DNA of 64,000 nucleotides from Ascoidea asiatica JCM 7603. Taxonomy: Eukaryota; Fungi; Ascomycota. The DNA lies in the NCBI GenBank assembly GCA_001600695.1, contig BCKQ01000003.1, forward strand, positions 652,003 through 716,002, given 5' to 3'. Every line of letters begins with the position of its first letter. Positions within the stretch are counted from its first letter, which is position 1. Positions 5,361 through 39,822 of the stretch are shown here, in pieces. The notes under the pieces were generated by a model that saw only the letters and a list, made by a program, of their open reading frames with translations, was not told where the DNA came from and ran no database searches. The position numbers and the translations under genes are program-made.

Positions 5361-5665
5361 ATTTACTTACTTACTTACTTACTTACTTATTCATTCTTTC
5401 AATTCTATCTTATATCTTTACTTACTTATTATTTAGCCAAATATCACATCACTTCTCTTATTCAAATACTGTAATACTTTAATATTCTTGTAGTTTTGTA
5501 ACTTGTTTTTTAAAATTTTAGAATAATTAAGGTTTGCAGACGTCTGCAGTGCACTGCCGTGTCCAGTCTTAACACTCAGACGCACGCACGTCTCACACAA
5601 AACCTAAACTTTATTCTTACAAAAAAAAAAAAAAAGAAGTTCCATCAAATTGGTCTCTCTTTTTT

Positions 5666-8164: not shown

Positions 8165-8590
8165 TGATAATAAATTATTTAAATTATTATTTGCATTTAA
8201 TAACATTTGTAATCTTTTTAAAACAGTCATTGAAAGTACTAAATTTTTTTTTGCTTCATCTAATTTTTGAATATTTGAAGTCATTTTACTTATTGTTAAT
8301 TCAGTTTTTTTTGATAATAAAGTTGTTTGATTAATTTGATTAATTAGATTCAATACATCATTATCAGCATCAAAAATGTCATTATCATTAGTATCATCAT
8401 TAGTATCATTGGTGTTATTATTTAATTGATTATAATCATTTAATATTAAATTATCTAAATTTGATTTATAATTATTTAAGAAATTTAATTGATTTGAAAT
8501 TGTTAATAATGAATCAGGAGTATCAAATAATTGATTAAGATGATTAATTGGATCATAATCTTTAGAATATAAATCATCAGAAGAATTCAT
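5666..8590 (-). CDS. VPS53: GARP complex subunit Vps53
   Basis: N-terminal DYDPINHLNQLF, LDEAKKNLVLSMTVLKRLQML, EAGSLENLSRRYIYFKK and LPSSADLF are typical of Vps53. Confidence 0.92.
5969..6037. repeat. 12-bp coding tandem repeat (ATTTCCAATTTC) x5 plus a partial copy, encoding GNEI repeats in Vps53
   Basis: Directly visible in the sequence. Confidence 0.9.
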
Positions 8591-9098
8591 TTTTAATATT
8601 TATATAAAAAAGAATGTATTGATATTTTAACGCTGATAGAAATTTGAAATTGATTAAATTATTTATCAGATTCAAAATTCATTCATTAATTTCTAAAATG
8701 GTAATTTTTTAAACCTTTATTTTTTTTAAATAAAATGGATTTAATTTCGTTACGTATCAATATTTGTATGTGTATTACGTAATCATTATTATATTTGTAA
8801 AAAATAAAATTAAAAGTACCACAAAACTGGTCTCGTTTCATAACGGTCACACTTTATTACGTAATAAATAGAGATGCTCCAATTTGTGTGAATGCAGGAT
8901 GTATTCTGAAATGTACCACCGAAATAAACCTACGACAGTAGTTAAGCAGTTGCGGTGCGTGTAAATACGATACCACTCAGATTTCAACCAATTGATTGTG
9001 ATTCAATCTTTATTACTGAAGCTCCATTGCTGATACTAACGGATATTGAATGAAAAATATCAATAGATATATACAAAAGGTATATATAAATATAATCA

Positions 9099-11858: not shown

Positions 11859-12167
11859 TAACGTTAATTACTTTAAAAAGATACTGAAATATTGAAAATA
11901 AAGGTCTATCAATAAACCAAAATAATGAATAACAAACAAGATCAAGAATATTAAGAATATCAAGAATAATAAGAAGTCAAAAATAATGAAAGTAATTCAA
12001 TAAATCAATAACATAATAACATAATAACATAATAACATAACATAATATAATTCAATTAAATCATAGACTTAAATAAAAGTCTTAAGTCATGTAAATAAAT
12101 AAATTCTCATCATCATTTAAATCTCTTTTTATTTTCTTTTTTTTTTTTATACATTATATAAAAAATT

Positions 12168-12272
12168 ATGAGTGATTTTGAATCAGATTCATTTGGTGAT
12201 GATGATGATGAGGAATTTGCAAGATTAACTGATTCTTTTATGGATCCAATTCATTCAATTAATCAAAATTTT

Positions 12273-27950: not shown

Positions 27951-30900
27951 TAACAAATTTAAGAATACACCAAAATTTAATTATGAATAGTTCAATTTAA
28001 GCTCAGAAAAATAAAATTATTAAAAATGATTAAAATATTTTAAACTACGAATTTAGTTCTCAGTTCGTACTGAAAATGCTTTTATCCCAACTTAAATTCC
28101 ATGAAACTTTGTAAAACTTTAGATTTGCCAGTACTGTTATTAATCACCGTAGTTAATTAATTAATTATTTAATTAATCAGTTAATTTATTAATTAATTGT
28201 AATTTTAGTTAATTAGTGTTTGTACTAATTAGTAAACACTAATTTATAAATTACTACTATCGGCAATACTAACTGGCTTTTAATTAGCTCATGGTAAATT
28301 AAGTTGGTCAATTAAGTTTGTTTTTACTTTTTCTTTTTTCATATTTTTTTTGAATTTGCAAATGTTTTTGCAATAATAGTTAACTTTAAAATTGTATACA
28401 AGGAAAATCAAAAGAAAAAAAAAATGAAAGGAAAAAAAAGGAAAAAAAAGGAAAAGAAAAGGAATGAGAATGAAAATGAAATTAAAAAAAAAAAAAAAAA
28501 AAAAAGGAAGGAAGGAAGGGTACACGTATTATATATATCCGTGTAAACAGTATGGGCAATAAATGCATTTATTAGAAATTTCCTAAGTTAACGTATCTTT
28601 TTCATTATCTTTTTTTAACCTGAATCATTAATTAATTAGTTAATTAATTGATTAATTAATATTTGAATAACAAAATAGGTCCATTACCATATTATTAACC
28701 TACCATTTTAAAACATTACCACATTTAAAAAGTCACTTTTGAAGAAATAGACGAAGATACAAAATTACAAGGTACAAAAAATATAAGAGTACTATAAATG
28801 GTAATCAATTCATAGATTTATTAATAATTATTACAATATGGTAGTGATATTTCTAATTAAACTAATTAAATTAAAAAACAATTAATTAATAAATAATTAA
28901 TTAATAATAATATATTAATTAATAGGAAGAATTATTAATTTCATTTCGAATCTTAATCAATCAGGTTACAAAATTTAATTTAAGGTTCTCTTAAAGTTAG
29001 GTTAAATCTAACTTAAATCAAATCAATTGAACTTAATTAAAATTTATTTTACATTAATTTCGTGATTAGGAATGATATTTTGATTTGTAAGTTACTGTAG
29101 AGTTGTAAAGTGCTGTAGTTTATATGTTAAAACTGCTAACATTTTACCATTAGTGAATATTTTTCTAGGATACACTCTGTGTTTCGGTGTAGTACTCGGT
29201 ACAGTAATTAGAAAAGTATTCACTAGACTGACTGCTCACCATAATTTAAAAATATTCACTAAGAAATTTTTATAATTCGGCTCTTGTTAACATCTGCCGA
29301 GTCAAGTATGGTATACTTTTAGAATTAAAAGTTAAGAAAATGTGAATTTAATTTAATAAAATGCAAAATTAACAAAATGTGAATTTAAGCTTAACAAAAA
29401 AAAGAAAAAATTCAGAAAAAAAAAGTCATTAACATTTATGTTTTTAAACAAAAAAATAGTTACAGAGAACGTACAGTAACAAGTTTTAAATATATTAATA
29501 AACCACAAGTTTAAATATTTATTCTTTCCAAAAAATTGCATAGAAAACATTGAATAAACACTGTTGGCGAAAAAATTTGAGGAATAAACTAAAACCAGTT
29601 CTTATCTCGTTTATAAATTAGAATTTATTTGAATCTTTTTGCTATATCAGCTTTATATATATTTGAAATTTAGTGAATATTAATCTAATATTGTGATAAT
29701 TGTAAGGATTGTTGAATTCTCAATATTAGCCCCAATAGCCCCAATAGATCAATAATCATATGAGAATCTTGAAAATATAAAGAATCCTAACGTTGGACAA
29801 AATTACGTAAGAAAACAATATCTGAAACTATGTGAAATTGATTGATTTACTCCTGAATACAGGGTTTATACATAGATTGTGCTTAGAGTACTAACCCTGT
29901 ACTGTAAAATACTGCTGAAAACTACGCTGTTGCTGTAGAGTTTTTTATTACTGTAATAATGTTACTATTGATATCAACGCTATTTGTAATTATTTTTAAC
30001 GTTAACACAACATTGCCCAAGTAATATGAGGCGTAAATTATTGAATTTATTGAAATACGTACAGAAAAGTAACGTTACTGCGAGAAATTTTGAACTGCAA
30101 AGAATTTGAAAACTTGAAAAATGTAAAAGAACAACGAATTGTGGAAATTTTGAAAAAAAAGGTTAAATTGAAAGTTAAATAGAATGTTTAATAAAACTTA
30201 AATTCAAATCATAATTTGAAATCATTTTTTGAATCAATAAAGTCAAGATTAAAATAAAAATAAAAATAAAAATACAAATACAAATTTGTATAAATTTTGT
30301 AAAATTACAAATTTACAAAATTATAGCAACAATTTCATCAATCAACATACTCGAAGGGATTTTGTAATTGCTGTTTTAAAACTCCCCAATAAAAATATAT
30401 TTTATTAATAGACCTTATTGTAGTTACCCTGTGAAAAGGCCTCACCAAATCTCTCATCTGAAAATGCACTGTTTTTGTTTGTTTTGTGGATCATCTTTTG
30501 TTTTTGTGGTATCCGCGGAATCCGTGGTGTCCGCTGAGGATTAGTATGTGTGGTTGCACGCGGAAAGACTGTGCCCCTGTGCTACGGAATTTTAAACAAT
30601 TTCCAGGCAATTCTCAGGCTTTGATTAAAGTTTTCTGGTCACTAATACGAAAAATATTACAAATACTAAAAATATTAAAAATATTAAAAACAAACAGCAG
30701 TTTTGAATAGTTTTTGAAGACTCTTCAAAGACCTCAGAGACTTCAAAAAGACTTCAAAGAGACTTTAGAGAGACTTCAAAAATGTATATCAAACTCCCGA
30801 GAGAGAGCTCTGTTTAACTCTAACATAACGATTGATTCGTAATTCTGATAGTATTATTTCAATCGATTGACACTAATTTAGATTCATTTGATATCACTTT

Positions 30901-37827: not shown

Positions 37828-37882
37828 TAGAGCCCTGATGGAAAGATGAAAAAACTCGTGACACGAAATTCAGCCCGGGTAA
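37828..37882. promoter_or_regulatory. snoRNA-cluster promoter: Tbf1-like AGCCCT and Reb1 CCGGGTAA
   Basis: TAGAGCCCT 37828-37836 and CCGGGTAA 37875-37882. Tbf1 and Reb1 sites typify S. cerevisiae snoRNA promoters. Confidence 0.6.
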
Positions 37883-38219
37883 ATTCATCTTTACAAGTTT
37901 CTGCTTCGTTTTCATCTCTTTTTTTCATATAAATTTTTGTTTCTCTTTTCACTTCCAAACTATTTTAAATGAAGAATAAAGAAGAATAAAAACAATAATA
38001 TTTGATTATCGATTATTTAATAGTCTTTGATTATATAGTTATCAGGATAATTTAGTCTTTTTTATAAGATTATTACCATTAATAGCTTTATTTATCAATT
38101 GATAAAAATGGGATATAGCTATGCAGATTATAGTAATTTAATGGAATAAATGGTATGTTTCTCAACTTCTTTTCAATCAAATAATAATAGTTAAATAAGT
38201 TTATTTTATGTTAATTTCG

Positions 38220-38294
38220 AAGATTATAAAACAATTGTTCCGACTGAATTTCATTGAAGACACAACATTATCGTTAAGTTTCAGCCTTGTATGA
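38220..38294 (+). ncRNA. SNR41: Box C/D snoRNA snR41 (18S Am541 and Gm1126)
   Basis: Guide CAATTGTTCC before D' CTGA (38244) is antisense to 18S GGAACAAUUG. Guide AAGTTTCAGCCTTG before D-like ATGA (38291) is antisense to 18S CAAGGCUGAAACUU. The +5 rule lands on the expected A and G. Confidence 0.88.
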
Positions 38295-38457
38295 GTTATT
38301 ATTAATCAATTATTCTTATTATTTACTATTAAATATTCAAACCTATTTTTTCTTTTTTTTTTTTTTTTTTTTTTTGAAATCCAAAACTAACATTAAATTA
38401 ATAGTATGTTTAAAAATTAATTTCAATTTGCTTTTATATTTTATCTTTTTTGTTTAA

Positions 38458-38590
38458 ATGAGGAAAGAAAACTTAGTGTCGGGCGGACATAATTTAGTTC
38501 TTTATCACTATTTCTTTGATTTAGTAGTCGCATCCTAAGTGTACAAAATTGGGTGTTGGTAGAGAATTATTGATGAATGACACATTCTGA
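38458..38590 (+). ncRNA. SNR70: Box C/D snoRNA snR70 (18S Cm1639)
   Basis: C-like ATGAGGA 38458. GGGCGG (38481) and GTGTACAAA (38539) are antisense to 18S UUUGUACACACCGCCC. C' TTGATGA 38570, D CTGA 38587. Lies between snR41 and snR51, as in S. cerevisiae. Confidence 0.82.
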
Positions 38591-38820
38591 TTCAAGATTT
38601 ATAAGGTTTATTAAATTTCAATTAATAACTTATAATAGTATTATGGATTATTAAATTTCTTCAATTATCAGAATCAAATAACTAACAATTCAATTTTCTT
38701 TTAGATTAGAGTATGTTAAAAATCAATCAAATCACGAAAAAGTTGCTTAATAGAAATATAAATGAGTTAGTTTGAAAATTTAGTTAATTTGATTATTCAA
38801 TCTTATTAACTGATTTCTAA

Positions 38821-38896
38821 ATGATGAACATTTTTATTCACACTGTATGATAATCCTTGATTACAAAAACAAAAACAACTGATTTAATGAATCTGA
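38821..38896 (+). ncRNA. SNR51: Box C/D snoRNA snR51 (25S Um2729 and 18S Am100)
   Basis: C ATGATGA 38821. Guide TATTCACACTG before D' ATGA is antisense to 25S CAGUGUGAAUA. Guide AACTGATTTAATGA before D CTGA (38893) is antisense to 18S UCAUUAAAUCAGUU. Short terminal stem. Confidence 0.92.
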
Positions 38897-39822
38897 TTTA
38901 AATAAACTAGCTCATTTATATTCCTAAGTGATTTTACTTTTTAATTTATCTTAAAAATGATTTTCTAACATTTTAGTTATAGTTTATATTTTTTTCCCTA
39001 TATATTTTGTCTCAATATAATTATCCTTTCTACATTTACAATTTTTACTTTCGGAGGAGTCATTTTTTCACTGCTTATTAAAATTTGACACATTTTTTGT
39101 ATCCATACTTTTTTTTATTACAAGGAGTTCTTTCTCTTTTTCATCTTAACCAAGCCAATTAAAAAAGCAATTGACTCATTTAAATTTCAGTTCTTATAAT
39201 CTTACTTCTCTTTATTACAATCCTTTACTTCTTTATTTATTATATCGCAAAATACTCATTAAATCTACATTTTTTCACTTCTTTTTTCTTTGTTTTCTTG
39301 TCTTCTCACTAACTATTTAAGCCGTTTTTGGCTTTAGATAAATTCTGGCCGCTTCTCGATTTCTATTGGCTGCCACCGTGTAACTCCCCAATCAATGCCC
39401 AACCACACTTTTTATCAAAACAACCATCAAAATTCAGTGAATATAAACAATTATCGAGGATTTTATCAGTAATTTATCAAATAATTATATATCAAAATCT
39501 ATATGTCAAGATAAGTATTGATATGAAAGCAACATAAAGATACTCATCTTACATTTTTCTTTCTTTGCTTACAGATTCCATTTATTTCTATTTTTTCCTC
39601 ACTTTTATAAAGTTCACTTCTAATTTCAATTTAGTTTCATTTACAAGTTTTGTTTTAAAGATAATTATTTACTTATATTTTATCTAAAGTAAACATATTA
39701 TATATAAACAAAGTGTCTTCTTTACTAAAGTATACCTATTATACCCTTTATACCCTTTATATCTTTATTTCTTCAAATTCTTATACCAATAATTATTACT
39801 ATTATTATAATCTATTTTAAAG

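Follow-up and report, generated by a model that had tools for sequence, protein, structure and literature searches.

The window, i.e. the whole 64-kb stretch of DNA that was analysed (G+C content 24%), carries on its + strand at 38153-38976 three abutting yeast-type introns, each of which could be read from the sequence as a perfect GTATGT...CTAAC...AG unit. Three C/D box snoRNAs, snR41, snR70 and snR51, lie one each in these consecutive introns. This part of the original prediction was borne out by the three complete intron units, by Rfam matches for snR41 and snR51, and by conserved sequence blocks for snR70. No open reading frame of at least 100 aa was found to overlap 38100-39000. The downstream gene is RTG2, for which the best named homologue is that of A. 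rubescens (66% identity), followed by that of Saccharomycopsis crataegensis (55%). We take the lineage of the window to be the Ascoidea-like CUG-Ser2 group, and this lineage is placed on the Saccharomyces side of the yeast tree. The features of the locus are as follows.

37830..37882, + strand: putative promoter elements of the host, with GAGCCCTGATGG at 37830-41 and CCCGGGTAA at 37874-82
38100..38152, + strand: exon 1, non-coding, 3' part, ending in ...AAATG; G38152 would complete the regenerated donor
38153..38404, + strand: intron 1, the internal intron of a [D1,2] layout, with GTATGT at 38153-58, AACTAAC at 38385-91 and TAG at 38402-04
38214..38299, + strand: snR41 C/D box snoRNA (Rfam RF01218, 70.2 bits, above the gathering score)
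38404, + strand: shared G, which closes the acceptor AG of intron 1 and also opens the genomic GTATGT of intron 2
38405..38704, + strand: intron 2 body, with AACTAAC at 38680-86; the first AG past the branch is 38703-04
38461..38592, + strand: snR70 C/D box snoRNA (Rfam just 18.9 bits; identified by position and conserved blocks)
38705..38710, + strand: 6-nt micro-exon ATTAGA, containing AG 38708-09, to which intron 1 could resort as acceptor in case intron 2 leaves before it
38711..38976, + strand: intron 3, with GTATGT at 38711-16, TTCTAAC at 38963-69 and AG at 38975-76; an alternative AG lies at 38981-82
38817..38898, + strand: snR51 C/D box snoRNA (Rfam RF01214, 63.5 bits, above the gathering score)

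The blocks that identify snR70, CGGGCGGAC and GTGTACAAA, are invariant in about six loci and are common to the window, A. rubescens and other yeasts, including a S. cerevisiae-like locus. Its boxes could be assigned as a variant C box (ATGAGGA, 38458-64), a C' box (TGATGA, 38571-76) and a D box (CTGA, 38587-90), and the weak Rfam score of this snoRNA is explained by the variant C box together with length differences. The C box reads TGATGA in A. rubescens and other yeasts. Further upstream, both of the motifs listed for 37830-37882 recur 5' of the cluster in A. rubescens (L038, about 8555-8585) in the form of GAGCCCTG(A/G)TGG and CCGGGTAA, and the pair likely represents promoter elements of the snoRNA host. 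The motif at 37874-82 resembles a Reb1 site, reading TTACCCGG on the other strand.

The splice signals at 38153-38976 are more than chance. GTATGT is depleted on the + strand of the window (6 seen versus about 18 expected from base composition), and half of these six fall within 560 bases at this locus, where they alternate one-to-one with the only three CTAAC in 37900-39300. Taken genome-wide, CTAAC-N(3-30)-AGTATGT showed no enrichment, with 30 matches against 52 in a reversed control, and the same held for AGGTATGT (6 matches against 11 in the control). An Rfam scan of 34 of the 36 motif-match loci, from which the window's own two junctions (L008 and L009) were left out, found solely snoRNA cluster II (L017) and a tRNA. 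Since the bare motif is not enriched, the case for the introns is one of context and not of motif. Elsewhere on the + strand of the window, GTATGT...CTAAC...AG units occur just twice, at 8766-9066 and 30544-30851; these may be introns, and no Rfam family inside either of them reached the gathering score.

At the first junction, between snR41 and snR70, the acceptor TAG (38402-04) and the donor GTATGT (38404-09) overlap at G38404 (TAGTATGT at 38402-38409), and our script classified the exon between them as having a length of -1. This agrees with the earlier observation that acceptor and next donor share one G and leave no exon. Because introns 1 and 2 overlap by this single G, removal of intron 1 rebuilds the start of intron 2 from an exon base, such that the intron 2 donor consists of G38404+TATGT in the genome, or of G38152+TATGT once intron 1 is gone. 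Regeneration of the donor by the terminal G of exon 1, as originally proposed, is correct as sequence logic and matches a mechanism that was shown on RNA at analogous loci (PMC5033589, PMC3596301). The 6-nt exon ATTAGA that had been reported ahead of the third donor was likewise read at 38705-10; extra AGs at 38708-09 and 38710-11 had been missed there, and the second of these again overlaps the donor G. The acceptor AG of intron 3 at 38975-76 lies just 8 nt from the branch A, a point that we counted against the explanation favored below. An uninterrupted run of T23 is present in intron 1 at 38353-38375, between snR41 and the branch site, and is absent in A. rubescens.

Splicing routes were enumerated by coordinates, with each GTATGT donor paired to the closest CTAAC 3' of it and to the first AG that lies 7 nt or more beyond the branch A. 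When only adjacent sites were used, every one of the six possible orders of intron removal freed each snoRNA alone in its own intron. If intron 1 leaves before intron 2, the junction 38152^38405 makes a new GTATGT (38152+38405-09), and 38151^38705 follows; the joining of 38151 to 38705 predicted for a later product was thereby reproduced. If intron 2 leaves first, intron 1 loses its own AG and finds AG 38708-09 instead, with 38152^38710^38977 as the product, and this AG can substitute for the re-formed acceptor because the host is non-coding. Both routes are viable, so that the overlapping sites exclude each other at any one moment, yet do not impose an order. In this sense the original prediction was right about mutually exclusive sites, but its ordered splicing did not follow from them. 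When skipping was allowed in an unrestricted enumeration, 6 of 12 routes placed two or three snoRNAs in one lariat.

Rnt1-type processing of the cluster was also considered and was rejected. We found no Rnt1-type AGNN-capped stems in the spacers, and the spacers were neither more structured nor more stable than shuffled sequence. With spacers that lack such hairpins and are not unusually structured, splicing-dependent release of the snoRNAs is the best reading.

The layout of junction 1 has close counterparts in other yeasts. By RNA-seq, Donovan et al. 2016 (PMC5033589) described 'nested splicing (internal exon of negative size)', in which splicing out the snR57 intron abolishes the following donor and restores it by means of the G of the upstream exon, together with a minor second pathway. 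The snR57-snR55-snR61 host is known to undergo nested splicing across a -1 exon in C. parapsilosis, C. orthopsilosis, L. elongisporus and D. hansenii (PMC5033589, PMC3596301). For D. hansenii cluster II, a figure legend of Luo et al. 2013 (PMC3596301) speaks of a 'shared nucleotide by two introns', and RT-PCR in this yeast gave stepwise 5'-to-3' products; overall, their ESTs and RT-PCR were consistent with stepwise 5'-to-3' removal, with alternative acceptor use not excludable. For C. albicans, Donovan et al. (PMC5033589) credit Mitrovich 2010 with a related case of a 5' splice site that is newly made. In common with these hosts, the window has a non-coding polycistron with one C/D snoRNA per intron, a single G shared by AG and GT, a terminal G of the upstream exon that regenerates the donor, and a possible second order via a tiny downstream exon. 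The features that define nested splicing, i.e. a non-coding host with intronic C/D snoRNAs, the shared G and an exon-1 G regenerating GTATGT, are thus all present at the sequence level. The window differs from the published hosts in that the junction concerned is snR41-snR70 (cluster III), in that the lineage is CUG-Ser2, and in that the fallback acceptor is an AG inside a 6-nt exon, whereas theirs is a single-base G exon.

In the terminology of stwintrons, the same junction has a [D1,2] layout, which is defined by a 'G upstream of the most 5' donor' (Fekete 2017, PMC5587772). It can be written as G38152 / GTATGT...snR41...TAG / TATGT, with 38153-38404 (own donor, branch and acceptor) placed between donor nucleotides 1 and 2, i.e. 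between G38152 and TATGT at 38405-09. As in [D1,2] stwintrons, a G precedes the 5'-most donor and two alternative internal introns overlap by one G. An alternatively spliced [D1,2]/[A2,3] form has also been described (PMC5587772; PMC12403724); the [A2,3] type has a G directly after the 3'-most acceptor, and in the window this position (38705) is an A. Described stwintrons are mostly found in protein-coding genes of Pezizomycotina, where the frame must be kept, whereas the host in the window is non-coding and has a functional snoRNA in each of the two introns involved. Metazoan ratchet-point recursive splicing uses AG-GT. Such a zero-length recursive splice site, with AG abutting GT, is not what junction 1 holds, as its AG and GT overlap by one base, although it would act in the manner of this family. 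Stepwise splicing across zero-length exons (Luo et al. 2013, Table S3) shares with the window the sequential 5'-to-3' removal and a donor that forms anew where exon 1 is joined; there, AG and GT stand side by side and leave the exon bases untouched, whereas the overlap in the window spends one exon base.

Altogether, we consider it probable that the locus is a non-coding host of the conserved fungal snoRNA cluster III (snR41-snR70-snR51) with one snoRNA per spliceosomal intron, a nested junction 1, and a main route that starts at the 5' end; its internal exons would have contracted to -1 nt and 6 nt. The main route would most likely be co-transcriptional and run from 5' to 3', with removal of intron 1 (38153-38404) as the first step. 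G38152 would then meet T38405 and create a new perfect GTATGT. In the second reaction, the RNA would be cut between T38151 and G38152 and 38151 joined to 38705, which would free snR70, after which intron 3 (38711-38976) would be spliced out conventionally. Every lariat would be debranched and trimmed down to the snoRNP. In a minor route, intron 2 (38404-38704) would be removed first and intron 1 would use AG 38708-09, giving the 38152^38710^38977 product. What the analysis shows is the anatomy of the sequence, its departure from chance, its conservation and the fact that both routes are logically viable; in-vivo use of the sites, and the share of each route, we infer.

That the intron-2-first order is instead the main route, with G38404 as donor, intron 1 relying on AG 38708-09, and G38152 retained in the mature host RNA, seems unlikely. 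The enumeration shows this order to be logically viable and the equivalent 'pathway 2' operates in the C. parapsilosis group, but it is a minor route there (PMC5033589), and the 5'-first pathway was predominant or the sole one seen in the published cases. Moreover, intron 1 is transcribed earlier, and the strict [A2,3] feature mentioned above is absent. From transcription order and the published cases, we infer that the 5'-first route dominates.

We regard it as rather improbable that donor 38153 is joined to acceptor 38704 or 38976 by competing or skipping choices, in which case partial snoRNA sets would be made and the overlap would tune their ratios. Half of the routes belong to this class when the enumeration is unrestricted, alternative acceptor use was not excludable for Luo et al. 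(PMC3596301), and alternative splicing of such polycistrons in C. albicans was described by Mitrovich et al. according to Donovan et al. (PMC5033589). Against this, two or three snoRNAs in one lariat would have no evident way of being separated, given spacers without Rnt1-like hairpins, and all three snoRNAs guide conserved rRNA methylations. The 5'-first nested reading has each snoRNA released from its own intron.

The cluster is syntenic in A. rubescens, where it is followed by RTG2 and then by hexokinase. Donor, branch and acceptor are kept around each snoRNA in this relative, and the intron flanks have diverged. Its junction 1 reads TCTAG-A-GTATGT, i.e. a 1-nt exon with a second AG that overlaps the donor. 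The exon between snR70 and snR51 measures 81 nt in A. rubescens (L038:9230-9310) versus 6 nt in the window (38705-38710), showing rapid shrinkage of this exon in the window/A. rubescens lineage. The host in the window had been proposed to be an intermediate in intron loss. This is not supported, because what has been lost is exon sequence with the splice signals intact: all three introns have consensus signals, and it is the exons that shrank (1 and 81 nt in A. rubescens versus -1 and 6 nt in the window). Mitrovich et al. are said to have treated the compaction of exons seen in Candida-type yeasts as a trajectory distinct from that of Saccharomyces, in which introns disappeared through decay of their signals.

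By scanning metagenome contigs with a 23-nt snR41 word, we obtained 13 yeast loci. The length of the snR41-snR70 junction was -1 in L049 and L053, 0 in L045 and L055, and +1 in L057. By the rules of our script snR41 was not intronic in 7 of the 13 loci, six of which resemble S. cerevisiae or Saccharomycetaceae and have no introns between the snoRNAs; in the seventh (L051) the donor ahead of snR70 is still present. In L054 (oriented 12120-12200), snR41 is intronic and no donor precedes snR70, so that snR70 appears to be exonic. In L057 (oriented 5395-5420), the snR70-snR51 junction reads TATAGTATGC, with a one-G overlap that comes after a single-base G exon. These two loci illustrate polymorphism in the presence of introns and exons. 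L049 belongs to a Saccharomycopsis-like genome, as judged from its Inn1 homologue, and three independent assemblies give exactly the same junction for it. In Saccharomycopsis crataegensis, the cluster is absent from the neighborhoods of both RTG2 (L039) and Inn1 (L058). In the literature, the snR41-snR70 junction is zero-length in C. albicans, C. tropicalis, D. hansenii, Y. lipolytica and many Pezizomycotina (Luo et al. 2013, PMC3596301) and 1 nt long in the C. parapsilosis group (PMC5033589, PMC3596301); Luo et al. counted 61 cases of lost internal exons in these snoRNA clusters.

AGTATGT occurs at the snR41-snR70 junction in all three CUG-Ser2-type loci (window, A. rubescens and L049), with exon 1 ending in G in each (TAACG in A. 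rubescens and ATACG in the Saccharomycopsis-like L049). Our pattern search further revealed a second case in the genome of the window. At L017:1320-2005 (G000:C9, about 494380-495060) lies a snR57-snR55-snR61 host with the same one-G overlap: exon 1 ends in ..AATGG before GTATGT, TAG and GTATGT share G1520, and the snR57-snR55 junction is therefore -1. The next exon is ATAA (4 nt), and AAG 1757-59 again overlaps the donor that follows. The corresponding host of A. rubescens (L044:8660-9440) has ordinary exons of 4 nt and 39 nt, with an A as the last base of exon 1 ahead of GTACGT. Co-occurrence of an exon-1 G with the overlap had been proposed as a point to check in relatives, and the G was present in 5 of 5 cases (clusters II and III of the window genome, L049, L053 and junction 2 of L057), a count that is not significant at an exon-1 G background frequency of about 0.8-0.95. 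This G ends exon 1 in 58 of the 61 rows of Table S3 of Luo et al. (PMC3596301), non-overlap junctions included. Since it is near-universal in the gene family, its co-occurrence with the overlap is consistent, but it does not discriminate.

These comparisons also bear on the quality of the sequence at junction 1. It is unlikely that the assembly is in error at the GG, and it would take a one-base error, with AGGTATGT as the true sequence, for the exon to be zero-length as in C. albicans or D. hansenii. A GG read as G is a common type of indel and zero length is the commonest published state of the snR41-snR70 junction, but the five ORFs checked in 31-46 kb, which together span about 7.5 kb of coding sequence, are long and unbroken and fit the Pfam families to which they belong, the same genome has another -1 junction (L017), and AGTATGT also occurs in A. 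rubescens and in the three independent assemblies of the Saccharomycopsis-like yeast, which together make such an error very improbable. Processing without splicing by an endonuclease and exonucleases as in S. cerevisiae, with vestigial splice signals, is hardly credible even though the S. cerevisiae-like loci L046, L050 and L056 are entirely without these introns, in view of the three perfect GTATGT and three CTAAC in correct order on a GTATGT-depleted strand, the maintenance of these signals in A. rubescens despite its diverged flanks, and the lack of AGNN-capped stems in the spacers.

For the nested host of cluster III, the work of Luo et al. 2013 and Donovan et al. 2016 and the definition of the [D1,2] stwintron mean that the mechanism is known, and it can therefore not be presented as a discovery, since it was already published for yeast snoRNA hosts. 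The finding in the window opens no new mechanism, and what is new is modest, namely the snR41-snR70 (cluster III) junction and the CUG-Ser2 lineage only. A full-text literature search for Ascoidea snoRNA gave nothing beyond one general review. It is conceivable, though doubtful, that the one-G overlap is an ancient and stable state of the snR41-snR70 junction across CUG-Ser2, and that the lineage of the window subsequently drove snR57-snR55 to the same minimum. If true, this would point to exons being eliminated in one direction, as far as the exon-1 G permits, and it would provide a natural system to study whether snoRNA stoichiometry is governed by the order of splicing and by competition between sites. 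In non-coding hosts, exon length appears to vary freely between +1, 0 and -1 nt, the last being the lowest value that a terminal exon G allows. For genome annotation this serves as a warning, as gene models with non-overlapping introns cannot represent such hosts. A published curiosity, that of nucleotide-sharing introns which regenerate their own donor, is hereby extended to a further junction within a conserved snoRNA host gene and to another lineage.
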